A DNA stretch of 64,000 nucleotides from NCBI GenBank assembly GCA_002269645.1, contig NIVC01000107.1, positions 327,867 to 391,866 on the forward strand, in the 5' to 3' direction. The notes beneath the pieces were generated by a model. The model had not been told where the DNA came from and searched no databases. It saw only the letters and a list, made by a program, of their open reading frames with translations. The DNA is from Macrostomum lignano (Eukaryota). A program made the translations under genes and the position numbers. Of the stretch, positions 4,481-45,518 are shown piece by piece. Each line of letters opens with the position of its first letter. Positions within the stretch are counted from its first letter, which is position 1.

Positions 4481-4857
4481 TCAGGGCTCGCACGAGTCGC
4501 ACTCGGCCAAAATCGTGCGGTCCTTTTTGACCTCCAGCACTCGGCAGTAGCCTGAGCAGCAGTCCTTGCCGCTCCAGCACCTGGTGCCGCCTTCTGAGCA
4601 CGACTTGCTGGATGAGCAGGCCGGTGCCATCTCTAGCTCTGCAGTGAGGAAAATTGTGTATTTATATAGATACTTTATATAGAGTCTTTGGGGTTAATGG
4701 CCCTCCTGGGTGCGAATGGCTCAGTATAACCCACCAGAGCCATGCAATACCTGTACTTGAAAAGAAGTCTCAATCGTCAGTTAATAAATGGCATTGCAAA
4801 TGCATAAAACAGCTACTCACGGGTAAGAAGAGTTATGATAATAAAAAAGTTGAACAT
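4481..4857 (-). CDS. Secreted Cys-rich knottin (ICK)-like peptide K1, 64 aa
   Basis: Exon1 4857-4821 (MFNFFIIITLLT, phase-1 GTGAGT donor). Exon2 4638-4481 after acceptor ttttcctcactgcag. Product MFNFFIIITLLTQLEMAPACSSSKSCSEGGTRCWSGKDCCSGYCRVLEVKKDRTILAECDSCEP*. AATAAA on minus strand at 4363-4368. Confidence 0.85.
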
Positions 4858-5334
4858 TTGTAATTTAGTGAAGAAGATGGAACTGTGTGTGCAAAGTGCA
4901 GTTGGATTCGAAGATCGGTGGTACTCAGATCCGGACACTTGGCTGCATGATGATGGAGATGGATGGAGAATGATAATCAGGCTTAGTTCTGGCTCAACTG
5001 CTGCCATAGACGGTAAAGGCCTGACACAAATTGAAGAGACAAAGAGAAGGTTCTGTAGCTGCCGGCGGAGACTGTCCCGCCAAGCATGGATTTCTTGTCT
5101 ATGGTAAAAAGTCAAACTTCTCTGTGGCACAGTCAACTGCAAGTGCCAGGGGTTCTCAATTCCTCTGCAAGACCTGGTCACTAAAATCTCAAGCTTATAT
5201 GATGTACTTGCTGCTTGCTTGGAATAGAACTGCCCTTTTTACGCAGTTATAGAATTTCTATTGGATACATGTAATTATTGGTCTGAAAGTTGGTAGCGGA
5301 AATGAAAGCTTAGCAATCTCTACACACGGATATA

Positions 5335-5740
5335 TTGCGGCAGAGATCAAAACGGGGTGAAAAGCACAGGCTGGGCTGGCAGCAGAGATCAAAGCGGGAC
5401 AGCAGGGTACAGGCTGGGCTGGCGGCAGAGATCAAAGCGGGGCAGCAGGGTACAGGCTGGGCTGGCGGCAGAGATCAAAGCGGGGCAGCAGGGTACAGGC
5501 TGGGCTGGCGGCAGAGATCAAAGCGGGGCAGCAGGGTACAGGCTGGGCTGGCGGCAGAGATCAAAGCGGGGCAGCAGGGTACAGGCTGGGCTGGCGGCAG
5601 AGATCAAAGCGGGGCAGCAGGGTACAGGCTGGGCTGGCGGCAGAGATCAAAGCGGGGCAGCAGGGTACAGGCTGGGCTGGCGGCAGAGATCAAAGCGGGG
5701 TAGCAGGGTACAGGCTGGGCTGGCGGCAGAGATCAAAGCG
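5335..5740. repeat. Minisatellite, 43-bp unit, about 9 copies
   Basis: gcagagatcaaagcggggcagcagggtacaggctgggctggcg repeated just 3' of the K2 stop. Confidence 0.95.
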
Positions 5741-5759
5741 GAGCAGCAGGCACAGCAGC

Positions 5760-6084
5760 TCAGGTGCACTCTGCAGTGAACGTCAAGTTCGGCCAGGCCT
5801 TGAGCACTCTGCAGTAGTGTGAGCAGCAGTCTTTGCCCGACCAGCAGCTCACTCCGTTGACCAGACATGGCTCTGTGGCGGGGCAGGCGACTGATGATCT
5901 CAAGTCTGCAACAAATTGAGCGGGTAACGGACTGCTCTTTGTTCATTCTAGTCTTGGTTTTAATTAGGAAATAAAATCGTTATTTACAGTTGATATTAGT
6001 CGATAGACTGCCTGAAAACTCACAGATTAGCAGTAAAATGAAGAAAGCAAGCAGAAGTGACTTCACGGACTGGTGTATTTTCAT
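5760..6084 (-). CDS. Secreted Cys-rich knottin-like peptide K2, 68 aa
   Basis: Exon1 6084-6024 (MKIHQSVKSLLLAFFILLLI, phase-1 GTGAGT). Exon2 5905-5760 after caatttgttgcag: (Y)LRSSVACPATEPCLVNGVSCWSGKDCCSHYCRVLKAWPNLTFTAECT*. Shares CWSGKDCCSxYCRVL with K1. Confidence 0.85.
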
Positions 6085-6343
6085 GGCTGCGTGATCAAGT
6101 TGGCAAACCTGCAAACTGACTTCTTGTGGTGGTCGCTCAAGTGAAGGTGGGTGCCAAAGCGCATGGCACCGAGAAGTAAATAAAAGTCCTTGTCTTGAAA
6201 TTGTCTGTGGCTGAAAACCTGTTTCTTGTAAAAGAACAAGACTCTGCTTTTACAAATCAAAGAGACCATTCTAAATCAGAATTTATTGCAAAAATTTTAT
6301 ATACCGGTATTTAAAGCAGAAATTTTCAGTGGAAAGAAACCAT

Positions 6344-7263
6344 ATGTCTGGCTGGCTTATGTTACTCCTGCTGGGCCTCTCCGTCAGCAGCCAACTGATT
6401 ACATGTGAGTCAGGGAGTTTTCAATGTCAGCGTTGCGCGCCATCATTGTGTTATGAACTTTCATGTTCTGAATTCGTGTTCTGAATTTATGTGTCCTGAA
6501 TCTGTGTTCTGAATTCGTGTTCTGAATTTGTGTCTTCAATCTGTGTTCTGAATTCGTGTTCTGAATTTGTGTTCAATCTGTGTTCTGAATTCGTGTTCTG
6601 AATTTATGTTCTGAATTCGTGTTCTGAATGATCTTGTTCTGAATTCGTGTTCTGAATTCGTGTTCTGAATTCGTGTTCTGAATTCGTGTTCTGAATTCGT
6701 GTTCTGAATTCGTGTTCTGAATTCGTGTTCTGAATTCGTGTTCTGAATTCGTGTTCTGAATTCGTGTTCTGAATTCGTGTTCTGAATTTATGTTCTGAAT
6801 TCGTGTTCTGAATGATCTTGTTCTGAATTCGTGTTCTGAATTCGTGTTCTGAATTCGTGTTCTGAATTCGTGTTCTGAATTCGTGTTCTGAATTCGTGTT
6901 CTGAATTCGTGTTCTGAATTCGTGTTCTGAATTCGTGTTCTGAATTCGTGTTCTGAATTCGTGTTCTGAATTCGTGTTCTGAATTCGTGTTCTGAATTCG
7001 TGTTCTGAATTAGTGTTCTGAATTAGTGTTCTGAATTCGTGTTCTGAATTAGTGTTCTGAATTTGTGTTCTGAATTCGTGTTCACGAAGCTTCTTTCCTC
7101 CAATCCAGCAGCGCAGGCCTGCAAGTGCCCCAGGGACCACCGCGGCTGCACCCTGAAGCAGGACGGCCAGGTGTGCGGCCGCGGCAGCGAGTGCTGCTCC
7201 CGATGGTGCCGGCTGAGCTCGGTCGCGTCCGGCATTAACAGGCGAGTCTGCGCGTCCTGCTGA
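6344..7263 (+). CDS. Secreted Cys-rich knottin-like peptide K3, 71 aa
   Basis: Exon1 6344-6404 (MSGWLMLLLLGLSVSSQLIT, phase-1 GTGAGT). Exon2 7109-7263 after cttctttcctccaatccag: (S)AQACKCPRDHRGCTLKQDGQVCGRGSECCSRWCRLSSVASGINRRVCASC*. Confidence 0.85.
6465..7085. repeat. Intronic minisatellite, 13-bp unit (gtgttctgaattc)
   Basis: Fills most of the K3 intron and explains the spurious 231-aa ORF. Confidence 0.95.
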
Positions 7264-7424
7264 TGAAGCTGAGCTGGCACCAGGCTCCCGCGGCCTCATC
7301 GCTTGGGGGGAAGAAACCGCATCACTAGTGCATGTATTGTAATAAGTTCACTGTTTTATACTCTGTTCATTTTAAATACACAAGTTACCGCAACAAATCA
7401 GTACATTTTAGTACAGTAATAATG

Positions 7425-7826
7425 TACTGAATAGTCTATATAGTCTATGTTCTTCACTGAATAGTCTATAGTCTATGGTCTTCACTGAGTAGTCTCTATA
7501 TAGTCTATGGTCTTCACTGAATAGTCTATAGTCTATGGTCTTCACTGAGTAGTCTCTATATAGTCTATGTTCTTCACTGAATAGTCTATAGTCTATGGTC
7601 TTCACTGAGTAGTCTCTATATAGTCTATGTTCTTCACTGAATAGTCTATAGTCTATGGTCTTCACTGAGTAGTCTCTATATAGTCTATGGTCTTCACTGA
7701 GTAGTCTCTATATAGTCTATGGTCTTCACTGAATAGTCTATAGTCTATGGTCTTCACTGAGTAGTCTCTATATAGTCTATGGTCTTCACTGAATAGTCTA
7801 TAGTCTATGGTCTAACAGTCTATACC
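7425..7826. repeat. Satellite array (about 28-32-bp units, agtctatagtctatggtcttcactgaat)
   Basis: Tandem units. Reverse complement of the array at 9138-9800. Confidence 0.95.
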
Positions 7827-8753
7827 TATTGACAAACTCGGCAAATAAAACTTTGTTTAAAAAATTCGTTGCCCACCTCCGCTTGACTAAATTCCTACAT
7901 GTACATTATTTTGAGAATTGGTGTTGCCAGGGCCCATTTTATTGCCGCAGGCACTCATTAAATTTAATTTGAATTTCTGAAAACCTTTCTGCCTTTCTGC
8001 AGAGGATAAACTATTTTATCCAATGACTCAAGAAGATTGAGAAAATTCATTAAAGACATAAACAAGCCACTCTGAACTGCCCTGAGGCTCGATTTAAATA
8101 AATGAGACAGAAGGAGGTGGTTCTTTGTTATTAATATTTTTAAGAACGAGATAATAATGGGCCAAAGGACTGCAACCGTTTGATTGCGGGTGCTTTCTAT
8201 TTAGCTATAGCTTTTTGATGATGATGGGACATTCCGGAAGAAAAAATGTTCTAGAAAGAGTAGCGCGGGAATTCAAGTTAACTATATTTAGAATTATTTT
8301 TATCGTGGAAATTTCTAGAATGAAATGTTTACTACATGGTCAGAAAGTTTGCGAAGGTTCAGTACAAGGTCACTACGGCTTCATTTTGGTACGAGTGTAC
8401 CGATAATATGATCTGCTTTACGTCGAGAAACTTAATTATTTAGTAATTGATGATTAAAGTATAATAGCAATTAAAATTAAAAGTTTAAATTAAAATAAAT
8501 TTTAAGAAATTAAGATTTTAAAACTAGGATTTTTCATCAAAAGAATAAGTTAATAACAGTAATAGAATAGCAACAAACACTAATTATTTTTTGTTTTTTT
8601 TCCTTCATTGTACTATAGCCTTAAATAACATTTTTAAATATGAAAATCAGCACCCTCTGCGCAAATTTTTAATAACAATATTTGTTGTTAATATGTACGC
8701 TCGTAAGTACGGTTGAATTTTTAAAAGAGCGCTTCGAATCACTTCGTACTGAC

Positions 8754-9098: not shown

Positions 9099-9137
9099 CT
9101 GCGATTGAAAAGTTTTTTCATAATGACCAGAGGTTTT

Positions 9138-9800
9138 GGTATAGACTGTTAGACCATAGACTATAGACTATTCAGTGAAGACCATAGACTATAGAGACTA
9201 TTCAGTAAAGACCATAGACTATATAGAGACTATTCAGTAAAGACCATAGACTATAGAGACTATTCAGTGAAGACCATAGACTATAGAGACTATTCAGTGA
9301 AGACCATAGACTATAGAGACTACTCAGTGAAGACCATAGACTATAGAGACTATTCAGTGAAGACCATAGACTATAGAGACTATTCAGTGAAGACCATAGA
9401 CTATAGAGACTATTCAGTGAAGACCATAGACTATAGAGACTATTCAGTGAAGACCATAGACTATATAGAGACTACTCAGTGAAGACCATAGACTATAGAG
9501 ACTATTCAGTGAAGACCATAGACTATAGAGACTATTCAGTGAAGACCATAGACTATAGAGACTATTCAGTGAAGACCATAGACTATAGAGACTATTCAGT
9601 GAAGACCATAGACTATAGAGACTATTCAGTGAAGACCATAGACTATATAGAGACTATTCAGTGAAGACCATAGACTATAGAGACTATTCAGTGAAGACCA
9701 TAGACTATAGAGACTATTCAGTGAAGACCATAGACTATAGAGACTATTCAGTGAAGACCATAGACTATATAGAGACTATTCAGTGAAGACCATAGACTAA
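9138..9800. repeat. Satellite array (30/32-bp unit, gaccatagactatagagactattcagtgaa)
   Basis: Tandem units, inverted relative to 7425-7826. Confidence 0.95.
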
Positions 9801-10154
9801 GACCGTGTTAAGTCAATGTCAATCAGACTCCAGAAAAAATATACCAATATCTCGCATTCTGGACTTCTGTATTGAAAACAAAGCAATTCTGCTTTTTTCG
9901 AAATTGATGCACAAGTTTCTTACGCTAAAGCTGTCAGTCCAGTCAGGTATCATAAATTCTACCAGAGACAAACCGACTAGTTTGAGCAAAGTGAGCGAAG
10001 TTCTGGCGATCCCACTATTTTCGTGCGTTCTATATACGACCTAAGTTAAGTTGCTGTCCATGCTTTACGAGTGTAAGTACATGTAGTTTGATGCATTTAG
10101 CCACGATTTTTAAACGGCTGTTGAATATAATTTACAATTTACGAGAAAACTCAC

Positions 10155-11558
10155 AGTTTTATCATTTTCTGGCTTAAGATATTCCTTGATCCAATTTTTG
10201 TCCAGTTGATCCAGACCGGCTGCTCCAGATGCTTCCTCAATTTGTCTTCTTTTGTGCTGGGACACAAAACGTAAGCTCGGTAGCCGCTCAGCTGCCTCCT
10301 TCATCCGGCGAATGCCCTCGGCGGGATCTTGGCCGCTGACCAGGAGAAAGCGGCCGAACTCGAACCGGACGTGAAGCCTCGTCTTGTTGCTGTCTGCAGC
10401 AGCCTGCTCTTCGAGGGCTTCGTATCTCTCACGAAGTTCGACCTTGTCGACAGCTTCTTCATTCTCATTCAGACCCAGCAGCCTCAGCTGGGCCCAGGTG
10501 TTTGTTAGATCGACTTTTTGCAGCAAGTATCTGGCTTTCTGGATTCTGTCCTCGCCAGCATCTTTTGTTTTGATGAAGTACAGAGCGCACTGGAAAGCGA
10601 AATCGCTCTTCAGGAACTCGCTATCTGACAGAGTCTCGCCAGTCTTCAAAACCTTCAGCTCCTTGTTCTTGAGCCTTTTCTTGAGAATTTGGTCCTGGTC
10701 TCCTTGGATTGGCACTTTCTTCCACTGCACCATTTTTGTCAGTCCGCGATAGACTTTGCAGCAGGTGATGTATACATGGAGGTGCTCGCCTGCAAACTGA
10801 ACCGCCTCATCTGCCAGCTGCTCAGACTTGTTGAAATGAACAGCGGAGTACGCGAGGGCCTCAGCGAACCGAGCCAGAAACATCGGGTGCTGGACTTTAC
10901 ATTTGTCCAGAATCCTCTTAGCCTCATCCCACAGCTCCACTCTTTCCTCTCCAATCTCAGCACTGAGGTCCGCCTGACGCCTCTGCATGGCCATCGCCTC
11001 TGCCAGACCGAAGCGCCAGTGGAAGCTCTGGACCGACTGCTCCAGATGGTGCTCCACCTCCAGCTTCAGGGCCTCCCGGAACGCCTTCGCGGCCTCCTCC
11101 AGCTGCTGCCTCCCGAAGCTGAGCAGAGTCCAGCCTTTGGCGCCCCAGACTGAGGCCCGGACCTGCGGCTTCTGCCACTCATCAGAGAGCTTCTGAAGCA
11201 TCATCTGCTCTTGCTGCTCATCTGGGTGGAATTTGTTCATCAGGTGCAGCTCCGTGGCCTCGATCAGGAAGGCCACATCCATGGTTAAAGGTGAATTAGC
11301 ATTCAAATCCAGCTTTGCTTCGTTAAGGTACTTCAGACACCGTGCTTCATCACCAGGTTGCTCCAGCATGTGCACGTAGACCAGACTCAGCAGGTGCAGC
11401 CCCTTTAGTCCGAGCTGGGTGTCCATCCTGCCTTGCAAGCTGCTGACGAGTCTGTCGATGCTCTCTGGGCTCTCGGCAAGTTTCGGCCTCCACTGGAAGT
11501 GACACGGAACCTCGCCCAGGCTCTTGAAAGACTCCGCTGGATTGTTGAGTTCCGCCAT
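10155..11558 (-). CDS. IFIT-like tetratricopeptide-repeat protein (large coding exon)
   Basis: 468 open codons from MAELNN. N-terminal LGEVPCHFQW resembles the IFIT L..L.CHFTW motif, and GAKGWTLLSFGRQQLEEAAKAFREALKL resembles IFIT EEGWALLK.G...YERAK.CFEKAL. Phase-0 donor act|gtgagt at 10155, or stop at 10110. Confidence 0.75.
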
Positions 11559-12786
11559 GGCGAGAACTGACTGTCTGAATGAACGGGGGGAGGGGGTAGG
11601 GTTGGGATCAGCTCTCAGGCAGCTGTCAGACCAGAGAGTCGGACTGACATCAGTGGCTCTACAAATGAAAAAAACCGTTAGACCAAGCAAGGAGAACAAT
11701 TAGTTTTACAAAATTACGAGTAGTAATGTTGGGTTACTTCCTTAGTACTTAAGCAGTAACCCTGTTGTTATATATAAATGTTGTCTGTTGTCTCTTTCGA
11801 TTGAAGCTAAAATAAACCTTGATGATGTCCGCTTTGGACGAAAAGCTTTGGCACGAGCTAATTGCACAACATTTTTCCTAGCTGCTGGTTCTATTTTTGA
11901 ATCTGACGCTGATCTCAGAAAAATAATAATGGAGGTTACTAAAAAAAGTCACGTACCGGAGCAGCAGTTGACAGATTTGACCCAATGGCTCACAAGGTAC
12001 AGCCTACCTGATCGATATTTTAGTTCCATATTTCTGCTTTAAATAGCTATCCAAATATATACCATATGGTTGAACCTGTTATGAGGGATTTTTAGTGAAG
12101 AAAACTAGCAATCAGCGCCCCCTGTTGGGGAGCCAACATGGTATGGAATAAAAATTATTGAACAAACTACATTTAGCTTCTGACCTCTAAGCCTTGACAT
12201 TTCAGCAATTCTCCCCAAGAGTCGCAGCATTAGCAACCTCTCCCCCTCAGGGCTTGACATCTTAGCAATTGATCCCTAATGAACCTTTTGTGTTTGACAC
12301 TTCAGTCTGTTTGACTCTTCTTTTACGTTAGACATGACAAAAAGTTTTCGTTTCACTGGGGACGGTGCAAAGTATGAAGTTAGTGCGTTTCGAGAGAGGT
12401 TGGCCCCCTGTTCCACATTTCTGTGGGACCAACAAATTTAAAGTTAAGAGACGCAGCTTTATAAGCTTCAATGACAACTCTCACAGCAGTCATATTCATA
12501 TCACAGGAGCACCCACGGGTTCGCTTGTAAATTTGCAGCTACTGTTCGAAAATGAAAAGAGCAAATTAGCGAGATCACTTACCGAAATACAGATGCTGAG
12601 AATGGCTTAGCGACTTTGTAGCACGGCTGGTTTATGTGAGTTGGTTTTGCTGGCCATTTAGTTTCAGATACATGTATAATATACAGTGTATACCATGCAG
12701 TCATATATGAACATGTACAATAGTTGGAATGGCGGACCCCCTACGCACTTAAAATCTAATTGGGGCGAGAATGTCAGATACAAATA

Positions 12787-14131
12787 CGAGGTGTATTCAA
12801 AAAGTTCTTTTCGGTGCCCTACAAAACTGAACACAAAACAACTGGAACTATGAAAACACTGTTAGATTGCTTAACATGATTCGGTCACTCAACATATTCA
12901 CCGCCAATGTCTTTGCACTTCTGCCAGCGATTTACCAGGCCTCTGATTCCGGAACTCACACCACTCGCGTCCGTTTGGCGAACAGCTTGATTGCATGCAG
13001 CCTCAATGTGCTCGACGCTGTCGAATCGAATGCCCCGAAGGTGCTTCTTCACAGATGGAAATAAGAAGAAGTCGCACGGCGACAAATCAGGCGAATAGGC
13101 TGGATGTTGGAGCACTTCCCATCCCCATTTGCTCAGGAGTTCCACGACGTTGTGCTTGCGATGTGCTGGCGCATTGTCGTGCAGCAGGATCACGCCAGAT
13201 TCCAGCAGATCAGGGCGCTTCTTTCGTATTGCTGGGCGCAGCTTCTCCTGCAGAATCCACTTGTAGTAGTCCCCATTGACGGTGGTTCCTTGTGGGACTG
13301 CCCAGTTCAGCAGGATTCCTTGGGAATCAAAAAACATGACGTGCATGATCTTCATCGCGCCCTGCTTCCTGATGGCCTTCTGAGGTCTTGGAGAATGTGC
13401 TGGAAGCCATTCGGCAGACTGGGCCTTTGTCTCAGGATCCCAGCTGTAAACCCACGTCTCGTCTCCAGCTACAATTCTTGATAGAAAATCCTCCCCTTCT
13501 CGATGGAACCGACGCAGGTGGCTGCTTGAAGCCACAGTTCGCTGCATCTTTTGCTCACCTGTCAGCAGGTGTGGCACCCACTTGCAAAACTTTTTCTGCA
13601 GGTGAAGACGCTCCGTCAGAATGGTGTGGACGCTTCCTACTGACACACCAACGTCTTCTGCCAACTCTTCGCAAGTCCGTCGCCGATCATCATCCAGGAG
13701 CTCTTGCACTTTCTTCACAACAGTCTCGTTGGTTGCAGTCATCGGCCTTCCAGAGCGATCATTGTCCTCAACGCTCTCTCTTCCCTCAGCGAACAGCCGG
13801 TACCATTTTCGAACTGTCTGCTCAGTTGGTGCACATTTGCCAAGCACTTGCTGAAGCTCCCTAAACATATCCGGTGGCTTTTTTCCTTGCAGAAACTGAA
13901 ACTTCATCAAGCTTCGAACGTCTTGCTTTGAAAATGATTCAGCCATGGCCAAGAAATTGAGTGGTAGCTGATAGAAATGTTCGCTGCTCTAACATAGTTG
14001 CAAACTGAGACTTAAAACCCTAGGAACGTTTAGGCCATAGACATAACTTGGTGAAATCGCTAAAATTCTGTTTACAAGGCTTTTTAAAAATAAATGCCAA
14101 AGGACCGAAAAGAACTTTTTGAATACACCTC
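12787..14131 (-). mobile_element. Mariner (Tc1/mariner, DD34D) DNA transposon, near full length
   Basis: 28-bp TIRs gaggtgtattcaaaaagttcttttcggt at 12788-12815 and 14104-14131. TA at 12785-12786. The right end is followed by a small duplication (gaatacacct) instead of a clean TA. Confidence 0.92.
12885..13952 (-). CDS. Mariner transposase, 355 aa, uninterrupted
   Basis: HTH region, WVPHLL, GDETW, HDNAPAH and YSPDLSPCDF motifs (D,D34D triad). Confidence 0.95.
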   Translation of the reverse strand: MAMAESFSKQDVRSLMKFQFLQGKKPPDMFRELQQVLGKCAPTEQTVRKWYRLFAEGRESVEDNDRSGRPMTATNETVVKKVQELLDDDRRRTCEELAEDVGVSVGSVHTILTERLHLQKKFCKWVPHLLTGEQKMQRTVASSSHLRRFHREGEDFLSRIVAGDETWVYSWDPETKAQSAEWLPAHSPRPQKAIRKQGAMKIMHVMFFDSQGILLNWAVPQGTTVNGDYYKWILQEKLRPAIRKKRPDLLESGVILLHDNAPAHRKHNVVELLSKWGWEVLQHPAYSPDLSPCDFFLFPSVKKHLRGIRFDSVEHIEAACNQAVRQTDASGVSSGIRGLVNRWQKCKDIGGEYVE

Positions 14132-14844
14132 TGAATACACCTTTTGAATGTACCAGCATATTCTGTTCGCAACTGCACTCTCTGGCTGTGATCGGTACAG
14201 TACGGAGCTAAGAGGAAGTTTGGGGAAATTGAGGGGGAACTTCATTGTTTCTCAATCCTCGTCTCCCTCCTTACGTACATGCGTGACGGAGTCATATCAC
14301 GGGTCTGGGTGATTGCGAGCTACATTCAACTGGCTCTCTCGAGGGCTCGATCACAATCTTGTTCAGTTACCACATAGTCTATACAAAAGAATCCACATTG
14401 ACTGTATGTGTGGTAGCCCAGCATTAATGTTGATCGATAATTTCCACCTTTTCCTAATGGCAACGCCAAGCAACGGACGCTGACGAGCTCGCTCGAACAA
14501 CAGCAAGTTGAGATGCCTTCAAGTTTGAGTTAGCAACGCCGAGCCGTGCTACCCACACTCAGTGCAGGTGTTCATGCTTTACCGGCGGTGACAGGTGCGC
14601 ACTCAGTGTTTCGTCGACTGCCTGCTGGCTCGTGCTGTCACCCGAATTTGGTAGGCGGCGGGAATGGCCTTTGTTTTCGCGCTATAACGCTGCTTTTTTT
14701 AGGCTGTAGGCATTCTGGCTCGCGCTCAACGCTTTCGGGGCGAAATCGTCTCAAAAAACCAGCAGTTTTGCCCATTTCGCAGACTCCAGAGCACATGCAT
14801 GCGCAAGCGCGCAAACACTGTACGCTTGGGGATTGACAAACCCC

Positions 14845-25192: not shown

Positions 25193-26050
25193 TCAAGCGC
25201 ACCGGAATACCTTCTTCCTATTGCGGATCGCCACCATGGAGCAGATGCCGCTGCAGCAGTCGGAGTCGCTCTGTGCGCACTCGGTTCCGGTGGCCTTGCA
25301 GCGGTCTCGCAGGCAGGTGGAGGCGCTGTCTTAAAATGCCAATGGTTTTGCATTAAATAGTTTAATAATATCGAATTCTTGTTCGATACCACCTAATTGT
25401 CGAAGAAGTCATGAAAAATTAGGTTGTCTGTCATTTCGGACAGAACGACATCGCGACCAAATGTCTTTCCGTCGAACACTACAATCCCCTTTGACAGCTC
25501 TAGACTGAGCTGACTGATTGTACCCGCTGCAATCTGCTCACACTGACTGATCCTACCCGCTGCAATCTGCTCACACTGACTGATTGTACCCGCTACAATC
25601 TGCTCACACTGACTGATCCTACCCGCTGCAATCTGCTCACACTGACTGATCCTACCCGCTACAATCTGCTCACACTGACTGATCCTACTCGCTGCGATCT
25701 GCTCACACTGCAACTGATCCTACCCGCTGCAATCTGCTCACACTGACTGATCCTACCCGCTGCAATCTGCTCACACTGACTGATCCTACTCGCTGCGATC
25801 TGCTCACACTGCAACTGATCCTACCCGCTGCAATCTGCTCACACTGACTGATCCTACCCGCTGCAATCTGCTCACACTGACTGATTGTACCCGCTGCAAT
25901 CTGCTCACACTGCAACTGATCCTACCCGCTGCAATCTGCTCACTAACTGATCCTACCCGCTGCAATCTGCTCACTCACAGAAGTTCTTGAATGATTATGA
26001 AACTTACTGATGATGACTAACAGACAAAATAAGAAGAACAGCAGTCTCAT
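25193..26050 (-). CDS. Secreted Cys-rich knottin-like peptide K4, 59 aa
   Basis: Exon1 26050-26008 (MRLLFFLFCLLVII, phase-1 GTAAGT). Exon2 25329-25193 after cattttaag: (N)SASTCLRDRCKATGTECAQSDSDCCSGICSMVAIRNRKKVFRCA*. Confidence 0.82.
25505..25972. repeat. Intronic minisatellite, 33-bp unit
   Basis: cactgactgatcctacccgctgcaatctgctca copies in the K4 intron. Confidence 0.95.
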
Positions 26051-31059: not shown

Positions 31060-31126
31060 GGCCGGATATAGAGAGGCTTTGCGGGCCACATTTTGGCTCT
31101 CAGGCCGGAGTTTGCCAACCCCCGGC
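31060..31126 (-). mobile_element. Possible hAT (Charlie-like) terminal remnant
   Basis: Minus strand ggggttggcaaactccggcc...atgtggcccgc resembles hAT subterminal sequence. No partner end with TSD was found. Confidence 0.35.
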
Positions 31127-36100: not shown

Positions 36101-39100
36101 CGCTTGCGGCTTCCGCTCCGGCCACGTCCGCTTGTTCGACCTGGCCGCCGCTTCCATGCTGGGTGAGCGGCGCAGCCATAGCGGCGCCGTCAGCGGGCTC
36201 GCCTTCTCCGCCTGCGGCCTCCGCCTGTTCTCCTGCGGCTCCGACGGCGGCCTGTCGGTTCACGACGCCTCGGCGGCCTGCGCGCTGCTCCGCTCCGTGC
36301 CCGACGTTGTCGCCAGGGTCGGCGCCGGCGGCTCCGAGGACCGTCCGAGCCCGCTGGCCGTGGACTCGGCCGACCCCGGCGGCTCCCTCATTGCCTACAT
36401 CGGGCCGACCGGCGCCGCGGTTGTCGTGGCCGAAGGCGCCACCCTCGCTGAGCTGATCCGCGTAGACGTCACCATGGTCGCCGGGGCGGGCGTGGCGGAC
36501 GCAGCCCGCGCCCTGCAGTTCGGCGCCGGGCACCTCCTGGTGGCCACGGAGGGCGGCCGCCTACTTCGATTGGAGCGCCGTTCCGGCCGCCTGGCCTCCC
36601 AGCTGTCCGACCTCGGCCGCTGCGACTGCCTCTGCCTGAGCCCGGACGGCCGTTACTGCGTGGCCGGGGTTGGCCGGCAGCTGAAGCTGTTCCAGAACTG
36701 CTCGACCGGACAGGTGCAGTTCTCCAGCTTCCTGGGCCACAGCGGCCGAATCTGCGCGCTCGCCTTTAGCGCCGACGGCGCCAGACTGATGTCCGTTGGG
36801 GAGGCGGTCCTCGTCTGGGACTTCATGGCCCCGCCGGCATCTGAGAAGCCTGCCGAGAACCTCAGGACTGAGAACGGCGCCAAGGTTTGTGGACAGTGAA
36901 ACCAGCCCCACCTGACTCCCAATGTACATCAGCCTCCCCACCTCACTCCCAATGTACATCAGCCTCCCCACCTCACTCTCAATGTACATCAGCCTCCCCA
37001 TCAACTCTTTGAGAAGTTTTCCATTTAATCCTTGTAGAAGCCTCAACCAACACCCGTCACGCCGGCCGCTCCGCAGTCGCGACACCGAGTGGAGGCGCCG
37101 GTGCGCGACCCCGGCCCGGGCCCGGCCACCGGGACGGCGAACCCGGAGCTCGCCGATGCCGTGCCGCTTGCGAACGACGGCAGCAGCTCCAGCTCCAGTG
37201 TGTCCGACTGCGAAGTCACGGAGCTCGCCGCGCCGGCCTCCAGCGCCCCGCCTGCCGAGCCGACGGTGTCGCTGCCGGTGCCGCCGCTGGCGCTGTTGCC
37301 CGACGAGCCGGCGGCGGGAGACGACGGCGGCGCTCCGCACGAGCATCCGGCGCCTTCATCTGCGCGCCACTTTCGGTCCGGCGCCGAGTCGTTGCGACAG
37401 CCGCCTGCCGACCAGCGGCGCTACCTGGCGCGGCCCGGCGAGGAGGCGCTGAGGCTGCGCGCCGGACTCGGTGCCGGCTCGGGCGTCGGCGCCATCGCCT
37501 GGCTGGAGGGCCGCGGCCGTCTGGTGTACGCCGTCGGCTGCCAGCTGCTGTCCGAGGACCTCGAGACCGGCCTGCAGGCGCGGCTCTGCCAGCTGCCCGG
37601 CCCGGCCACCGCGGCCGCCGCCAGCTCCGACAGCCGCCTGGCCGCCTTTTGCTGCCTCGGCGGCGGTCTGCGCATTTTCGACGCCGAGGCTGCCGACGCT
37701 GCGAACGCCGAGGCGCCGGAGGGAGTGTCGATGGCGCTGATCTGCCGCCCGCTGTCCGGCGGCCCGGCCACCTGCGCGCAGTTCAGCAGAGACGATCGCT
37801 ACCTGCTGACCGTGGGCAACCACGCCGATCCCCTGCTGCAGGTCTGGCTGGGTCCCGACTGGCAGGCCGTGGCCAGCCACCGGGCGGCCTACCCCGTCAA
37901 CGACGTCTGCTGGCGCGCCGCCGACCTCGCCAGTTTCGTCAGCGTCGGCACCGCGGCCGCCCTCTCCGTCTGGTCGGTGGTTAGCGGGCCGGACGGATCG
38001 CAGCGGCTGCAGCTGGAGGAGCTGCCCGCGCCGGACGAGGCCATCGGACGGCGGCCCGGACTGCGGGCGTCGGCTGCCTCAGCCGAGGAGCTGTCGGCTT
38101 GCACCGTCGACTCTGACGACGCCGCGTTTGTGGCCGGTGGCCGCGGCCGGGTCTCCGTGTGGTCGCTGGGCGAGCGCCGCTGCGTCATGCACTGGGAGGC
38201 CGAGGCCAACGAGGTGTGTCGGCTGGCCCTGCGGCCCGGCGGCCTCCTCCTGTGCGGAGCCGCTGACGGCGCCGTCAAGGCGTGGGACGTGCGCGACATC
38301 CTTGGCCTGGGCGGCGGCGGCTGGTCGGGCGGCCGCGTCCGGCTGGTCAGCTCCGCCCGACTGGATGGCGCCGTGCTGGCGCTGCTGCCGGACAGCCAGG
38401 CCGAGCTGGCGCTGGCCGCCACCGCTGCTTCCGTGTGGTGCCTCCGAGTTGCCGAGGGCGCCGCCACCCGCCTGATCGCCGGCCACGCCGCCCGCGTCGC
38501 CGCCGCGGCGCCGTTGCCCGGCCTCGGCGTCCTGGCCACCGGCGACGCGTCGGGCGCTGTCCGAATCTTCGACTCGGCCGGACGGCAGCTCCTGTGCCAG
38601 CTGCAGCCCGGCCGCCTCTCGGCCGCCTGCCTCTGCCTGGCCGCGGACGCCCTCTACTTGGCGGCCGGCTACGGGGACGGCCACGTCCGGGCCTTCACGG
38701 CCGGCGCCGACCTCGGCCAGACTTTGAAGGCCCGCCCGCACGCGGCCGGCGTGTCCTCGCTGGCTTTGGACCCCGGCCACCGTTTCCTGGTCAGCGGCTG
38801 CTCCGACGGCCTGCTGGCGCTGACGGGTCTCGACACCGGCCTCGTGCTGCGCGTCCTCCGCGACCACCGCGGCTCCGGCGTCGCCTGCCTGGACATCCAG
38901 CCGGACTCCGGCGGCTGCCACTTCCTGGCCTCCGCGGCCGACCGCCGCCTCAGCCTCTGGGCCTGCGCCGACTCCGCCGACTCCGTCGACCTCCGCCTGT
39001 GGCTGGCCTTCCCCCTGCCGGCCTTCGCCCCAGGCAGCGGCCGCCCGCTGTCTGACGATCCGACGGCCGCCATGGAGCTGCCGCCGGCGCTGGCCCGCTT

Positions 39101-39434
39101 CTGCCCGGCCGACGCCGACCTGCTGCTGCTGACCGGCTGCGCCCAGCAACCGGCCGTGGACCTCTACAGCCTCGCCCAGCGCCGAGTCGTCCGCTCCGTG
39201 TCGCTGCCCCGCTGGCCGCACTGCCTGGACGCGTCTCCGTCCGGCCGCCTGCTGCTGCTGGGGTCGCTCGGCCGCCTTGTCACCCTGCTGGACCTCGGCA
39301 GCGGCTGCTTCCAGGACTTCGTTGGACACGCGGAGGGCCTGTCCTGTGTCCGGTTCGGCGAAGATGGACGGTCCTGCTGGACTGCGGCAGGGAGAGACGT
39401 CCTGGGCTGGGATGTGCTGATCAGGGACTGCTGA
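33160..39434 (+). CDS. WDR90: WD repeat-containing protein 90 (CFA20/DUF667 domain plus multiple WD40 propellers)
   Basis: Exons 33160-34425, 34552-35025, 35784-36884 and 37038-39434 (all phase 0, about 1745 codons). N-terminal YPYLNLFK...SASNYIQLP...YLYVQFRP.PGRHFVLHVD matches the WDR90 CFA20 domain. GH...W[D] WD repeats and a C-terminal QDFVGH motif are present. The start exon was not located. Confidence 0.92.
35195..35740. repeat. Intronic minisatellite, 15-bp unit (cacctgaccaaatta)
   Basis: WDR90 intron. Confidence 0.95.
36915..37005. repeat. Intronic 30-bp tandem repeat x3
   Basis: cccaatgtacatcagcctccccacctcact. Confidence 0.9.
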
Positions 39435-39615
39435 GTGCGCTGGGGTGTGCTGATCAGGGACAGCTGAGTGCGCTGGGGTGTGCTGATCAGGGACAGCTGA
39501 GTGCGCTGGGGTGTGCTGATCAGGGACAGCTGAGTGCGCTGGGGTTTGCTGATCAGGGACAGCTGAGTGCACTGGGGTGTGCTGATCAGGGACTGCTGAG
39601 TACGCTGAGGTGTGC
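39410..39615. repeat. 33-bp tandem repeat containing the WDR90 stop codon
   Basis: gtgctgatcagggac(t/a)gctgagtgcgctggggt about 6 times. Confidence 0.9.
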
Positions 39616-39919
39616 TGAATGTTGCTCATTTGTCCGTCCATGTTTTAGCTATAAAAATGAAATAAAATTTGTATTTTAATTAGCAGAAATTTTGCGCATT
39701 CCGTCCTATTTAGCTCGTAATACACAATATACACACTGTAATTAGCCTGGCTGCTAAAGTTTATTTCGATACATATCGGCAATCGACTTGTAGTTATAAT
39801 GATAGCTCTACCTACCGGTAGCCAGCTGTTGTATGACCTACAATGACCCAGCTTTGTTACAATGTAGAAGCATTCCATTTGCCTGTCATTATTAATAATT
39901 TTATTTTGCTTGCAGAATT

Positions 39920-41097: not shown

Positions 41098-42963
41098 ATG
41101 AAGCTTAAATCGAAGCTGCAACTCTGCTCGGCCCCGACAGCATCCGGAGACGGCAGCCCTGAGCTGGCGATGCAGACGGCCGATGGCACCCGGCTGGGGC
41201 AGCTGATGCAGCTGCCGTGCATGCAGAAGTACCTGGCCAGCTTCCAGCCCGACGCTGTCGCCGAGATTCAGCGGCACATCGACAATCGTCTCAAGCGGTC
41301 GACGCCTACGACGACAGCCGCACCGTCGCCGCATCAGCCGCCGTTCCGTCTGCCGACCTACGCCGAGTACGTCCGCATGGTGCAGTCGCAGCAGGACCTG
41401 CGCCCCCAAGTTCGCGTTGTTGACAGTGAGAGCCGGCAGCTGCGGCACAACCACAGCGACACCGGCGGCTGCCAGCTGAGCGGCCAACGCCGTCGGCTAT
41501 ACGACGACGAGCGACTGCAGACGGTGTCGGAGCTACTCGCTTCCGAGGAGCGGTTCAGCAGCGACCTCCGCCTGCTGCACACCGAGTTCCGCAGGCCGCT
41601 GCTGGCCAGCCGCCTCCTCAGCGCCGAGGACGTTGCGGACGTCTTCGTCAACCTGCCGCAGCTGCTGCGGGCTCAGGTCTCCCTGCTGGACCGCCTTCGA
41701 CTGGCCGTCTCTGCAGCCGTCGCCGCCGGAGATGCCGACCAGGCCGCTGCCGGCGTAGCCGACGCCTTCCTGGACGGCGCCACCGACCACCTCACCTGCC
41801 TGCGGCACTACAGCGTCGGGCACCGGCGCTCGCTGGCCCGCCTTGACCGCCTGGAGCGGCGCTGCCGCCTGCTGCGCCTCTTCCTGGCGGCCTCCCAAGA
41901 CGACAACCCGCGCCTGCGCCGGATGCCTCTGCGCGCCTTCCTCATCCAGCCCGTGCAGCGGCTCATGCGGTACCCCCTGCTGCTCGACCGCCTGCTGCGG
42001 CTCAGCAGCTGCGGCGGCGGCGGCGGCGGCGGCGGAAAGCTCGACTTTGCCAGCTCGACGGTCGAGCGGCTGCGCCGGGCGAAGTCGCAAGTCGAGGCCG
42101 CCATTGCCGAGACCAACGCCCGCGCCCTTGAGCCGTCCGACGCGCAACCCCAGCAGCCGCCGCAGCCGCAGGCGCCGTCGCCTCCTCCGCGGCAGCTGCT
42201 CACCTCTGCCTCTTCGAACTCGCTCTCGGCCATCGGCTGTCTGCGCCACTTCGCCGGCCCAACGAGGAAGGCGACGCCGCTGACAACAGCCGCCGCTGCG
42301 GTCGAATGGGCGGCTGCCAGCCGGCAGCGCAGCGCCTCCTGCAGCGGCGCCGACCTGGTACGCCTCGCGCTTGACCGCCTGCGCTGGGGCACCGCAGCCC
42401 GCTGTTGCTTCAGCGGCGCGGTCTACGCGGCCCCGACCGCCACGGCCGACCTTCGCAGCGGCTGCTGGGCGGTGCTGATCTCTCGAAATCTGCCAGAGGA
42501 CGCCGGGGCTGCCGAGTCTGGCGCGAAGAAGCTTTCAGCGCTGCTGTTTCCTGGAACTCTGGACCGCGAAGCCGCAGCGGTCGCAGCTGAAGTGGGCGAC
42601 GATGAGCCGGAGGCGGCGCTGCTGCTGTTCCAGGAGCCGCGGCTCGGCAGGCGGGCGCTGCTGCGGGAGCCGCTGCTGCTCAGCGCCTGCGTTGTCGGCG
42701 AAAGCAGCGACGACTTCAGCGTCCGCGTCTCGGACGTCCGCGGCGGCAGCGGCGTCGCCCGCCTGCGGCCCGCGGTTGACTCGCCAGCGGCTGCCCTGCG
42801 TCTCCAGCGACTTCTGCGCCGTGTCAGCCTGCGCTGCGGCCGCTGGCGCCTGCGGAGGCCGGCGGCGCCCAACGCCCTCCTGGCTGGACTGGTCGGCAGC
42901 TCGAGCCCCCCACCCACGTCTGTGGCGTCCGGACACTCCTGGCTGGAAGAAGCGGAGCGTTGA
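41098..42963 (+). CDS. Dbl-homology (RhoGEF) domain protein, single large ORF of 621 aa
   Basis: DH motifs ELLASEERFSSDL, VFVNLPQL, FLDGATDHLTCLRHYSVGH and LRAFLIQPVQRLMRYPLLLDRL. A degenerate PH-like region may follow. Confidence 0.85.
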   Translation: MKLKSKLQLCSAPTASGDGSPELAMQTADGTRLGQLMQLPCMQKYLASFQPDAVAEIQRHIDNRLKRSTPTTTAAPSPHQPPFRLPTYAEYVRMVQSQQDLRPQVRVVDSESRQLRHNHSDTGGCQLSGQRRRLYDDERLQTVSELLASEERFSSDLRLLHTEFRRPLLASRLLSAEDVADVFVNLPQLLRAQVSLLDRLRLAVSAAVAAGDADQAAAGVADAFLDGATDHLTCLRHYSVGHRRSLARLDRLERRCRLLRLFLAASQDDNPRLRRMPLRAFLIQPVQRLMRYPLLLDRLLRLSSCGGGGGGGGKLDFASSTVERLRRAKSQVEAAIAETNARALEPSDAQPQQPPQPQAPSPPPRQLLTSASSNSLSAIGCLRHFAGPTRKATPLTTAAAAVEWAAASRQRSASCSGADLVRLALDRLRWGTAARCCFSGAVYAAPTATADLRSGCWAVLISRNLPEDAGAAESGAKKLSALLFPGTLDREAAAVAAEVGDDEPEAALLLFQEPRLGRRALLREPLLLSACVVGESSDDFSVRVSDVRGGSGVARLRPAVDSPAAALRLQRLLRRVSLRCGRWRLRRPAAPNALLAGLVGSSSPPPTSVASGHSWLEEAER

Positions 42964-42976
42964 TTGTCCGTTGAAA

Positions 42977-43448
42977 TCAAGGATCTGGGATCAAGGATCT
43001 GGGATCAAGGATCTGGGATCAAGGATCTGGGATCAAGGATCTGGGATCAAGGATCTGGGATCAAGGATCTGGGATCAAGGATCTGGGATCAAGGATCTGG
43101 GATCAAGGATCTGGGATCAAGGATCTGGGATCAAGGATCTGGGATCAAGGATCTGGGATCAAGGATCTGGGATCAAGGATCTGGGATCAAGGATCTGGGA
43201 TCAAGGATCTGGGATCAAGGATCTGGGATCAAGGATCTGGGATCAAGGATCTGGGATCAAGGATCTGGGATCAAGGATCTGGGATCAAGGATCTGGGATC
43301 AAGGATCTGGGATCAAGGATCTGGGATCAAGGATCTGGGATCAAGGATCTGGGATCAAGGATCTGGGATCAAGGATCTGGGATCAAGGATCTGGGATCAA
43401 GGATCTGGGATCAAGGATCTGGGATCAAGGATCTGGGATCAAGGATCT
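42977..43448. repeat. Minisatellite, 14-bp unit (atcaaggatctggg)
   Basis: Begins 14 bp after the RhoGEF stop. Confidence 0.95.
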
Positions 43449-43909
43449 TAATACTATGCATAATTTACTTCTTGCACAACTCGCTTTGCGTGACACGAAC
43501 GCCACTTTTATTGCAAGACTCAGTAGTATTAGCGTTTTTTCAGTTACTGAAATAAACATTTACAAATGATGCTTAAATATAATATAACCTTATCATGCAC
43601 TGTAGACTATGCAGTGTACATAAATATGTGCAAATTTTAATCGCCACCTTCAGTACGAGGTGCTGCCCTTCAAGACGCTGCCTGGCGCAACAAGCAACAA
43701 AATAAACAGCAATAGTGCTGAGTAGACGAGTAGCTAGTTGAGATGACTAAACAGTTAGCCTATCTTATTAAGAGTGCTGTCCTTAAATTACACAATGGCA
43801 GCATTCGATACTTGAGTAATTGTCATGACCAGGCTTTATCAGGGTACTGCGCTCGTGTTTCCACAAAAATCGGAAAAGGGGTCAACTTAACTCAAAAATC
43901 TTCCAACAT

Positions 43910-44395
43910 AAATGACACAAATGCCACACAAGCTGACACAAATGCAACACAAGCTGACACAAATGCAACACAAGCTGACACAAATGCAGCACAAGCTGAC
44001 ACAAATGCCACGCAAGCTGACACAAATGCCACGCAAGCTGACACAAATGCCGCACAAGCTGACACAAATGTGACACAAGCTGACACAAATGTCACGCAAG
44101 CTGACACAAATGCCACACAAGCTGACACAAATGCCACGCAAGCTGACACAAATGCCGCACAAGCTGACACAAATGTGACACAAGCTGACACAAATGCCAC
44201 GCAAGCTGACACAAATGCCGCACAAGCTGACACAAATGTGACACAAGCTGACACAAATGCCACGCAAGCTGACACAAATGCCGCACAAGCTGACACAAAT
44301 GTGACACAAGCTGACACGTCACGCAAGCTGACACAAATGCCACACAAGCTGACACAAATGTCACGCAAGCTGACACAAATGCCACGCAAGCTGAC
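43910..44395. repeat. Minisatellite, 21-bp unit (gacacaaatgccacgcaagct)
   Basis: Explains the spurious QADTNAT ORFs. Confidence 0.93.
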
Positions 44396-44734
44396 TCGTA
44401 AGATAAGCAAGATACGAGTTAAGAACATTGTTCTAAAACTGCTTAGAGCTACACACTGCACCATAAATCTTATATACATATTGTTGTATATAAGATTTAT
44501 GCTCAGCACTCTCTCTACACTCTGCATGCCTACCATGCAGTTCTACAAATAGCTTCAAGCACTGAGTTGCTGCGGTCTCGGCCATAGACAGTCGCAGTAA
44601 GCGGGTCGCAGTAAGAAGCGACTGGAGGTGGCGATCCGTACGTTACAAGGTGTTTATTCAGACGAATTTGTTAGGAATTTTAATGTTTGACCCCTGAAGT
44701 GTCACTTAAAAGTGCATGCACTTTACAAGCTGCA

Positions 44735-45050
44735 ATGAAACTCGGATTATCGAAAAACTTCAGCCTTTGGCTGCTGGTCTGTGCGCTCCTGCTGAACTGT
44801 GAGTGCTGCAACGTCTGCTCAGTTTTTATCGATTTTTGCTTATCAATCTCACTGTGAGGGATGTCAATCTCAACCATCTCACTCCGCAGGCACCGGCAGG
44901 GTGTACAGCTGCCAGTGGAGCGTCTCCGGCTGCGCCAGTCGCCACCGCAGCTGCCAGTACGCCTGGGAGTGCTGCCCGGACCTCGACTGCCGGCCCTACG
45001 TTGACCCGGTGGACGAATTCCAGTTTCCCGATGTCCTGGTCTGCCAGTGA
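44735..45050 (+). CDS. Secreted Cys-rich knottin-like peptide K5, 74 aa
   Basis: Exon1 44735-44798 (MKLGLSKNFSLWLLVCALLLN, phase-1 GTGAGT). Exon2 44890-45050 after ctcactccgcag: (C)TGRVYSCQWSVSGCASRHRSCQYAWECCPDLDCRPYVDPVDEFQFPDVLVCQ*. AATAAA at 45131-45136. Confidence 0.85.
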
Positions 45051-45228
45051 GCCGCGTGCGGGCTTTGACCTTCTCTGTTCTCACCTGTTTTGTGCAGCTG
45101 TGTCTGACATTTAGTAAGACGGAGTGTTAAAATAAACTGATTTAAGTCGTTTTAATTTGTCTTTCTATGTGACCAACAGTTGATAATGAATGGCAAAACT
45201 TTAGTTAAACAGCAGAGTTCGCAGCAGG

Positions 45229-45518
45229 TCATTCGCAAATGTTGGTGTAGACGCCGCTTCCGTACATGTGCTCCGGGACGGGGATTCGCTGGCAGGTGAA
45301 GCTGCAGCAGTGCCGGTCCTCTCGGCAGGGGCCGCCTTTCGGATTGCAGGGCAGCTCAGCGCCGCAGGTGGTGCAACCAGCTGCAAATTTGTTGCAGTTC
45401 TGAATGAGGGGCTGAACTTCAACTGCAATGACGCCCTATGCGATAACTTTGCCGTTGGGCGCCTCAACTCACCGACAAGAGCCAGCAGGACAAGCAGATG
45501 AAGAACACAATGCCTCAT
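45229..45518 (-). CDS. Secreted Cys-rich knottin-like peptide K6, 65 aa
   Basis: Exon1 45518-45473 (MRHCVLHLLVLLALV, phase-1 GTGAGT). Exon2 45380-45229 after aaatttgcag: (A)GCTTCGAELPCNPKGGPCREDRHCCSFTCQRIPVPEHMYGSGVYTNICE*. Confidence 0.85.

Follow-up and report, generated by a model that had tools for sequence, protein, structure and literature searches.

A family of six two-exon genes for putative secreted knottin peptides in the free-living flatworm Macrostomum lignano

Knottins are a well-known scaffold of toxins, antimicrobials and drug leads. Here, we describe six small genes of one common architecture (genes A to F) in a window of 64,000 nucleotides (nt), the whole stretch of DNA that was analysed, which forms the final 64 kb of Macrostomum lignano contig NIVC01000107.1 (391,866 bases). 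Window and contig, the latter part of assembly GCA_002269645.1, are 100% identical over the 17,263 overlapping bases compared, in agreement with the flatworm origin that a preliminary description, made from the DNA letters, had thought probable. The genes occupy positions 4481–45518, a range whose two ends coincide with the stop codon of gene A and the start codon of gene F, and their products are best compared with a handful of described peptide systems.

Within the same phylum, the UPF0506 proteins of parasitic flatworms, including Schistosoma, are secreted and Cys-rich and have a C-x6-C-x5-CC-x3-C core like that of the present family. In the cestode Schistocephalus solidus, proteomics places a UPF0506 protein with a knottin fold and of unknown function in the secretome (PMC8400842), and another member marks the parenchyma of S. 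mansoni (bioRxiv 10.1101/2020.02.03.932004). The S. solidus motif consists of two knottins in tandem, the last loop being short (x4), whereas the peptides described here have a single domain, a hairpin loop of 13–18 residues and an additional conserved Cys. The best sequence-profile match of the family is phi-xibalbin3-Xt3a (Xt3a; 7rz3), a bivalent double-knottin toxin of remipede venom that activates ryanodine receptors (PMC9950431). Its second domain reads C-x4-C-x6-C-x6-CC-x4-C; unlike the flatworm peptides, Xt3a carries two knottin domains per chain and is the product of a crustacean venom gland.

Omega-hexatoxin-Hv1a (Hv1a; 1axh, PF06357), from funnel-web spider venom, has the spacing C-x6-C-x5-CC-x3-C-x13-C. 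Genes A, B and D follow a nearly identical plan (C-x6-C-x5-CC-x3-C-x13/14-C, with x6 before the CC pair in D), and Hv1a and the flatworm models alike have a long C-terminal beta-hairpin between their final two Cys. Identity is about 28%, over half of it Cys, and the flatworm peptides differ from Hv1a in their extra conserved N-terminal Cys, their lack of a propeptide, their phylum and the absence of a venom apparatus. This likeness is no less likely to reflect convergence on a widespread knottin loop plan than common descent. O-superfamily conotoxins (framework VI/VII) share with the family the order C-C-CC-C-C, secretion and hypervariable loops set in an unchanging Cys frame. Their precursors, however, consist of a conserved signal, a propeptide and the mature toxin, whereas the flatworm family has neither a propeptide nor a conserved signal; conotoxin genes also have three exons, the flatworm genes two. 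By description alone, CRP-I of the lophotrochozoan Mytilus, secreted knottin-like peptides with gene presence/absence variation and no demonstrated target (PMC10138031), may be seen as a functional and evolutionary analogue.

Gene architecture and transcript support

All six two-exon genes of the preliminary description were found in place, each with a signal exon of 12–21 codons, a phase-1 GT(G/A)AGT intron and a Cys exon (Table 1). Exon 1 comprises whole codons plus 1 nt in every case, so that all introns are in phase 1. The donor is GTGAGT in five of the six genes (GTAAGT in gene D), and the acceptor is CAG in five, gene D again being the exception. Prepeptides measure 59–74 amino acids (aa). 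The Cys domain begins 5–7 residues past the splice junction and a propeptide is absent; that there is no acidic one had been noted before. Aligned over their mature regions, the products share seven invariant Cys (C0-x4-7-C1-x6-8-C2-x5-6-C3C4-x3-4-C5-x13-18-C6); the extra N-terminal Cys of the preliminary description, here C0, is one of these. Its picture of divergent loops on a fixed Cys frame likewise holds, with a non-Cys identity among paralogs of 6–20%, or 41% for the A/B pair. Base composition carries a coding signal: exon 2 has a GC content of 0.58–0.71, and of 0.68–0.85 at third codon positions (GC3), against 0.36–0.50 in the introns.

The strict Cys pattern occurs six times in the six-frame translation of the window, compared to a mean of 0.005 and a maximum of 1 in 200 simulations that preserved local composition. 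A scan of both strands that was blind to the Cys exons, and asked for an ATG start, a hydrophobic mini-exon, phase 1 and a GTRAGT end, returned only the six signal exons and an internal-ATG version of that of gene C. Signal and Cys exons pair one for one, each signal exon being followed on its own strand by a Cys exon at a distance of 91–704 nt. Run on the window, a hidden Markov model (HMM) of the family found exactly six members, each at a minimum of 46 bits, the next best segment scoring 8.6 bits; leave-one-out profiles recovered A (E=7e-13), B (E=1.5e-10), D (E=2.8e-4), F (E=0.0039) and C (E=0.013). All six coding exons lie outside tandem-repeat arrays. The gene family is real, and the observation is confirmed. 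No k-mer of at least 8 nt was common to four or more of the upstream regions. A looser Cys pattern also picked up 5313–5444 and 58619–58738, which we rejected as translated minisatellites, and the frame 52981–53073, rejected as a composition artefact of GC-rich sequence.

Three of the genes have counterparts in GenBank. The spliced products of genes E and F exactly match PAA90598.1 (BOX15_Mlig024450g1) and PAA90599.1 (BOX15_Mlig014727g1), both from NIVC01000107.1 itself, and gene C corresponds to PAA90593.1 (BOX15_Mlig024546g1), with the acceptor shifted 3 nt downstream. All three entries are labelled hypothetical protein, and functional annotation is lacking for all six genes; the UniRef name of gene F and its copies is 'WAP domain-containing protein'. 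The genes had been described as unannotated, which is right for A, B and D and wrong for C, E and F. The GenBank annotation of this assembly has RNA sequencing (RNA-seq) transcript assemblies as its sole basis, and transcripts overlapping repeats were deliberately removed before submission (PMC5730564). Since the junctions of C, E and F match an annotation made in this way, three of the six junctions have transcript support. A, B and D are absent from that annotation. An exact-sequence lookup among about 15 billion proteins did not contain the products of A, B or D, and the GenBank listing has no gene called at A or B on NIVC01000107.1, nor at B′ or D′, the counterparts of B and D on the related contig. 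Because B, C and D adjoin or contain minisatellites and repeat-overlapping transcripts were dropped, absence from the annotation is weak evidence.

Gene C has two acceptors 3 nt apart (CCAG/CAG/ at 7105–7111, slashes marking the possible intron ends), the alternative intron end being 7111. Among its copies, the +3 acceptor is that of the annotated model g1 (…ITSQACKC) and the upstream one that of g2 (…ITSAQACKC), and the choice adds or removes one alanine beside the predicted signal cleavage site. All precursors start with an uncharged hydrophobic run of 9–16 residues, with a mean hydropathy of 1.6–3.6, and small residues follow at positions −3 and −1 directly before C0, the sites in A, B and C being APA/C, SVA/C and AQA/C. 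Judged by this heuristic, the six products appear to carry classical secretion signals, gene A being the weakest case. From one paralog to another, the signals bear no sequence relationship.

Sequence signature and predicted fold

In all six products, the core Cys follow the order C-C-CC-C-C with the spacing C-x6-8-C-x5-6-CC-x3-4-C-x13-18-C, and loop lengths are within the knottin range. Compared to the sequences in the PDB, the family profile matched Xt3a at E=3.7e-7, a value that sums two domains of E about 0.005–0.01 each, and omega-atracotoxin-Hv1 (1axh) at E=0.0018 over the whole domain. Weaker matches include DkTx, bidentatide, maurocalcin, and conotoxins of the omega and delta types; up to E=10, the knottin toxins other than Xt3a and 1axh number at least 20. 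Matches at E<0.2 are cystine-knot toxins only, with the non-knottin proteins Nuclease S1 (E=0.22) and LRP6 (E of at least 3.8) further down.

None of the six products reached the threshold of a curated Pfam family. UPF0506 (PF11703, cut-off 23.2 bits) was the best Pfam match of A, B and D, with 22.1 bits for B (E=2e-4) and 15.6 bits for both A and D, and had no match in C, E or F. The other knottin families found below threshold were Conotoxin, Toxin_18, Toxin_21 and Toxin_29, alongside three non-knottin matches: MotB_plug and DUF4576, both in the signal region, and Big defensin in gene C, which reaches from the signal into the early part of the Cys domain. The conotoxin families (PF02950 / PF08087, cut-offs 25.1 / 24.3) scored 11.4–14.4 bits, with A and D only, and Omega-toxin (PF06357, cut-off 22 bits) matched none of the six at E up to 1. 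With conotoxin and spider-toxin matches so far below threshold, membership of the peptides in the conotoxin-like group to which they had been likened is not supported.

AlphaFold models of the mature peptides of A and F, with predicted local distance difference test (pLDDT) scores of 78.2 and 79.2, both contain a beta-hairpin between C5 and C6 (predicted strands 28–33/39–43 in A and 29–33/44–48 in F). For either model, the best Foldseek match was 1axh, at a probability of 1.00, with template-modelling (TM) scores, normalised to the target, of 0.73 (A) and 0.81 (F) and root-mean-square deviations of 3.3 and 1.2 Å, the superposition of gene F extending over 39 columns. Aps III, maurocalcin and the knottin trypsin inhibitor SOTI-III came next, and the top matches were all knottins. 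Judging from the superposition of the models on 1axh, disulfides I-IV, II-V and III-VI are expected for the six core Cys. Profile matches to knottin toxins and the likeness of both models to omega-atracotoxin-Hv1 back the earlier assignment to the inhibitor cystine knot; of the checks suggested with that assignment, structure prediction gave a fold match to knottins and Pfam gave no family at threshold. Sequence signature and predicted fold together support a reading of the products as knottins that stand outside all curated toxin families.

How far does the family extend? A word-indexed homology search returned only the three annotated clusters of M. lignano itself. An exhaustive HMM search of 1.84 billion representatives found generic C-x6-C-x5-CC-x3-C tandem knottin repeats from bacteria, metagenomes and a springtail, for which Pfam itself reports conotoxin I2, UPF0506 or omega-toxin and which we rejected as orthologues; no other full-length single-domain relative was among the matches listed. 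As far as sequence searches reach, the family appears confined to this lineage.

Related copies and the seventh cysteine

Each annotated gene is present in three genomic copies, g1 to g3, which would fit the recent genome duplication of M. lignano. Gene E differs from its copy E′ by six nonsynonymous and one synonymous codon changes, four of the nonsynonymous ones within the signal region; F and F′ differ by two of each kind, and introns and intergenic sequence in this E/F comparison diverge by about 3.5%. Between D and D′, we count three synonymous changes and no nonsynonymous one, with both splice sites kept and flanks about 2.5% divergent. Genes B and C are identical in all copies, gene B having two further copies on NIVC01002381.1; with 0–1 differences in about 700 nt, the B/C region is uninformative on selection. 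Every copy retains all core Cys. The counterpart of gene A on NIVC01002381.1, A′ (L003 8030–8371), has its acceptor changed from AG to AA, a frameshifting tandem duplication of 40 nt in the Cys exon, and its stop codon TGA changed to TGC. Evolution of the family is uneven: D is conserved, E fast and A′ dead.

The ratio of nonsynonymous to synonymous substitution rates (dN/dS) comes to 0.40 between A and B, whose synonymous sites are close to saturation, and to 0.87 in E and F pooled (12 changes). The divergent loops had been taken for the usual signature of toxin diversification. These ratios, together with the purely synonymous changes in D, do not demonstrate positive selection, which is neither supported nor excluded; the copies rather suggest gain and loss of genes under weak constraint outside the Cys. 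A second, near-identical B/C pair was seen at L003 164–1946, within the annotated range of the clathrin heavy-chain gene of NIVC01002381.1, and reflects either a segmental duplication or an artefact of the assembly.

The seven conserved Cys are an odd number, a point that went unremarked in the preliminary description. Total counts are seven in B and D, eight in A, E and F, and nine in C, the extra Cys residing in a C-terminal C-x2-C (A), at the N-terminus (E and F) or in both places (C), with none in B and D. Either the partner of C0 differs by paralog, or C0 is free or intermolecular in some of them. The C-terminal CxxC might provide the partner in A and C, and in E and F the other Cys at the N-terminus might do so; an unpartnered C0, as in B and D, could leave a free thiol or give rise to a disulfide-linked dimer. 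The second domain of Xt3a likewise has a Cys at the C0 position. We consider it doubtful, albeit worth stating, that the family represents a flatworm-specific 7-Cys variant of the cystine knot, whose odd Cys would serve in homo- or heterodimers between paralogs or in capturing a thiol of the target. If so, this variant would be a combinatorial, fast-turnover arsenal, defensive or partner-manipulating, in an animal not regarded as venomous.

Proposed role, rival explanations and genomic setting

What might these peptides do? The explanation that we favour, and think probable, is that the window holds six paralogous, lineage-restricted genes for secreted single-domain knottin peptides. Exon 1 would give nearly the entire signal peptide, with the phase-1 intron at the boundary between signal and mature parts, and signal peptidase would probably cut directly before the first conserved Cys, as the (A/V)-x-A/C motif of A, B and C suggests. 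The product of 43–53 aa (about 45–48 aa for mature gene A) is modelled to fold without a propeptide into a compact knot, with a long beta-hairpin between the last two Cys in the style of Hv1a. Local duplication would have generated the genes: A and B are in tandem, B and C divergent (head to head, their ATGs separated by 259 nt), and E and F convergent (tail to tail, with 178 nt between their stop codons). Released from gland or epidermal cells, the peptides may act outside the animal, where hypervariable loops and hairpin on a rigid knot would bind an ion channel, a receptor or the microbial envelope. As to their role, we tentatively propose secreted extracellular binders that are defensive or antimicrobial rather than a prey-capture venom; while this is possible rather than probable, we deem it somewhat likelier than a reproductive role. 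Laboratory cultures of M. lignano are fed diatoms, and we disfavour prey-capture venom for this reason.

Several observations weigh against the favoured explanation, or against parts of it. Genes A, B and D are missing from the transcript-based annotation, the A′ counterpart is a pseudogene, and gene D depends on a weak AAG acceptor. Gene E, the most divergent member, was not recovered by its leave-one-out profile (E=1.8e3) and thus has no profile-detectable homology; it is tied to the family solely by the distances between its Cys, by its gene structure with the phase of the intron, and by its place next to gene F. The signal region of gene A is short and devoid of basic residues. The alignments behind the AlphaFold models are very shallow (6 and 9 rows), with Foldseek E-values of about 0.05, so that the structural support for the fold is moderate, and an odd number of conserved Cys is atypical of a simple three-disulfide knottin. 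The dN/dS values offer no evidence of positive selection. Finally, net charge ranges from −3 to +6 across the six products, which renders a single, uniform cationic antimicrobial mechanism unlikely. Taken as a whole, the earlier interpretation is partly supported.

Some of these points lend themselves to a narrower account, in which C, E and F are the only working genes, and A, B and/or D are recent untranscribed duplicates or incipient pseudogenes. In line with this, A, B and D are missing from an RNA-seq annotation that kept similarly short products (65–74 aa), A′ on NIVC01002381.1 is disabled in acceptor, frame and stop, and the acceptor of D is weak. On the other hand, A, B and D keep their frames, start codons, GTRAGT donors and all Cys; D and D′ differ by synonymous changes only, with conserved splice sites; gene B is intact in three copies; and repeat-overlapping transcripts were dropped from an annotation in which B, C and D lie next to minisatellites or contain them. 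We judge this account to be somewhat unlikely. Rather unlikely, too, is a reproductive function, which would retain fold and secretion and have the peptides made in prostate or other genital glands, transferred at mating and acting on receptors of the partner. M. lignano has at least 76 prostate-limited transcripts, and signal peptides are predicted in 38 of the 65 with an identifiable reading frame (PMC5977470); the fast change of E (6:1), the dead A′ and the restriction to one lineage also match the rapid evolution of reproductive genes. Conservation of gene D argues against it, as does, weakly, the absence of family motifs and identifiers from the supplements of PMC5977470, the reads having been mapped to the older transcriptome assembly MLRNA110815. 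No paper was found to mention Macrostomum alongside knottin, any of the gene identifiers, the UniProt accession or a motif of the peptides. Supplementary files of PMC5977470, PMC5816591 and PMC5730564 yielded nothing on the family and no tissue or expression link, and this search of literature and supplements thus connected no expression data with the genes.

Other rivals concern the kind of protein. Knottin-type serine-protease inhibitors of the squash or SOTI-III sort, in place of ligands of channels or membranes, are suggested by the presence of SOTI-III among the top structural matches of both models (TM 0.56–0.63), but this match is weaker than that to omega-atracotoxin-Hv1, loop 1 is wholly different between paralogs with no conserved reactive-site loop, and the sequence profile finds toxins, not inhibitor families; we consider them improbable. 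The UniRef name of gene F and its copies would instead imply WAP-type four-disulfide-core domains, that is, protease inhibitors or antimicrobials with WAP connectivity. Formally, the Cys of F, E and A come in the order of the WAP framework (C-C-C-C-CC-C-C), and the centre C-x5-CC-x3-C belongs to the spacing of WAP domains as well. Against this, Pfam WAP (PF00095) matches no member even at E=1, the PDB sequence search brings up neither a WAP nor an elafin or SLPI chain at E up to 10, whether with the profile or with F alone, and no WAP chain is among the Foldseek matches of the A or F model; moreover, the last loop has 13–18 residues instead of the 3–4 of WAP, and the eighth Cys is variable in position and absent from B and D. 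With Pfam, PDB sequence and fold searches all unsupportive, we rejected the WAP identity of gene F, and regard WAP domains as a very remote prospect for the family. Least credible of all, at next to no probability, is a chance or repeat-derived artefact without any genes. Although the window is rich in minisatellites, some of which translate as Cys-rich pseudo-patterns (5313–5444 and 58619–58738), such an artefact is refuted by three exact GenBank proteins derived from transcripts, by the simulation (6 observed versus 0.005 expected) and by the blind scan with its one-for-one pairing of signal and Cys exons, none of the coding exons falling within a tandem array. Six genes for secreted knottin peptides remain our preferred explanation; their coordinates are collected in Table 1.

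Table 1. Exons and introns of the six genes (positions in the window)
Feature	Position	Strand	Description
Gene A exon 1	4821..4857	-	37 nt; MFNFFIIITLLT + 1 nt; signal exon, 12 codons, without basic residue
Gene A intron	4639..4820	-	182 nt, phase 1, GTGAGT...CTGCAG
Gene A exon 2	4481..4638	-	including stop; 8 Cys: C-x5-C-x6-C-x5-CC-x3-C-x14-C-x2-C
Gene B exon 1	6024..6084	-	61 nt; MKIHQSVKSLLLAFFILLLI + 1 nt
Gene B intron	5906..6023	-	118 nt, phase 1, GTGAGT...TTGCAG
Gene B exon 2	5760..5905	-	7 Cys: C-x5-C-x6-C-x5-CC-x3-C-x14-C
Gene C exon 1	6344..6404	+	61 nt; MSGWLMLLLLGLSVSSQLIT + 1 nt
Gene C intron	6405..7108	+	704 nt, phase 1, GTGAGT...CCAG
Gene C exon 2	7109..7263	+	9 Cys: C-x1-C-x6-C-x8-C-x5-CC-x3-C-x13-C-x2-C; net charge +6
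Gene D exon 1	26008..26050	-	43 nt; MRLLFFLFCLLVII + 1 nt
Gene D intron	25330..26007	-	678 nt, phase 1, GTAAGT...TTTTAAG (weak acceptor)
Gene D exon 2	25193..25329	-	7 Cys: C-x4-C-x6-C-x6-CC-x3-C-x13-C; net charge +4
Gene E exon 1	44735..44798	+	64 nt; MKLGLSKNFSLWLLVCALLLN + 1 nt
Gene E intron	44799..44889	+	91 nt, phase 1, GTGAGT...CCGCAG
Gene E exon 2	44890..45050	+	7 conserved Cys + 1 at the junction; CC-x4-C and final loop x17; net charge -3
Gene F exon 1	45473..45518	-	46 nt; MRHCVLHLLVLLALV + 1 nt
Gene F intron	45381..45472	-	92 nt, phase 1, GTGAGT...TTGCAG
Gene F exon 2	45229..45380	-	8 Cys: C-x2-C-x5-C-x6-C-x5-CC-x3-C-x18-C

In gene D, an in-frame TAA just 5′ of the Cys exon leaves no alternative acceptor for the Cys frame. 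The window as a whole is rich in minisatellites: Tandem Repeats Finder returned 34 rows with periods of 5–182 nt, examples being 5337–5750, 6460–7083, 25510–25974, 42976–43448, 51864–52758 and 54687–55207. One minisatellite begins 10 nt past the stop codon of gene B, and two lie inside introns, namely a 13-nt repeat of about 48 copies in gene C (6460–7083) and a 33-nt repeat of 14 copies in gene D (25510–25974). Just downstream of gene C, arrays of one ~30-nt unit at 7426–7829 and 9151–9799, in opposite orientations and about 1.3 kb apart, form a large inverted-repeat structure. At 48032–48406, a GCGGAT hexamer array of about 62 copies has long open frames on both strands and might be low-complexity coding sequence. 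A coiled-coil-like open reading frame (ORF) at 57935–58846 (+) enters a 33-nt repeat of seven copies (58593–58830) that translates as CWANCCSWVVD over and over, a false positive in Cys-pattern scans.

The window also contains a mariner/Tc1-like element of about 1.36 kb (12788–14150) with terminal inverted repeats of at least 28 nt and an intact transposase ORF of 355 aa on the minus strand (12885–13952; Pfam HTH_48, Transposase_1 and DDE_3). It is cleanly absent from the related contig (empty site L003 16323–16325) and therefore looks recently inserted. A 529-codon open frame at 10110–11699 (-), which has no Pfam match and no gene in the GenBank listing, may encode a repeat-element protein dropped from the annotation. 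Of conventional genes, clathrin heavy chain reaches with its 3′ end into the beginning of the window, followed by a WDR90/POC16-like gene with a CFA20 domain and beta-propellers (33103–39641, +; local GC up to 0.70), a RhoGEF-domain gene (41098–42963, +) and a RING-finger gene (55230–56462, -); on related contigs, an M20 peptidase gene is found beyond F.

For the public annotation of M. lignano, these results amount to a correction: three paralogs are missing from it, and one WAP name is unsupported. Fold, gene architecture and evolutionary mode are all of familiar kinds, unsurprising to the specialist, and nothing is overturned. The locus does offer a clean, small case of gain and loss among recent duplicates, with one gene conserved, one fast and one dead on a related contig. 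RNA interference works in M. lignano. Transgenesis is established in this species as well (PMC5730564). So far, flatworm knottins (UPF0506) have been known solely as uncharacterised secreted proteins of parasites; the family described here is an entry to flatworm knottin biology in a free-living, genetically tractable species.

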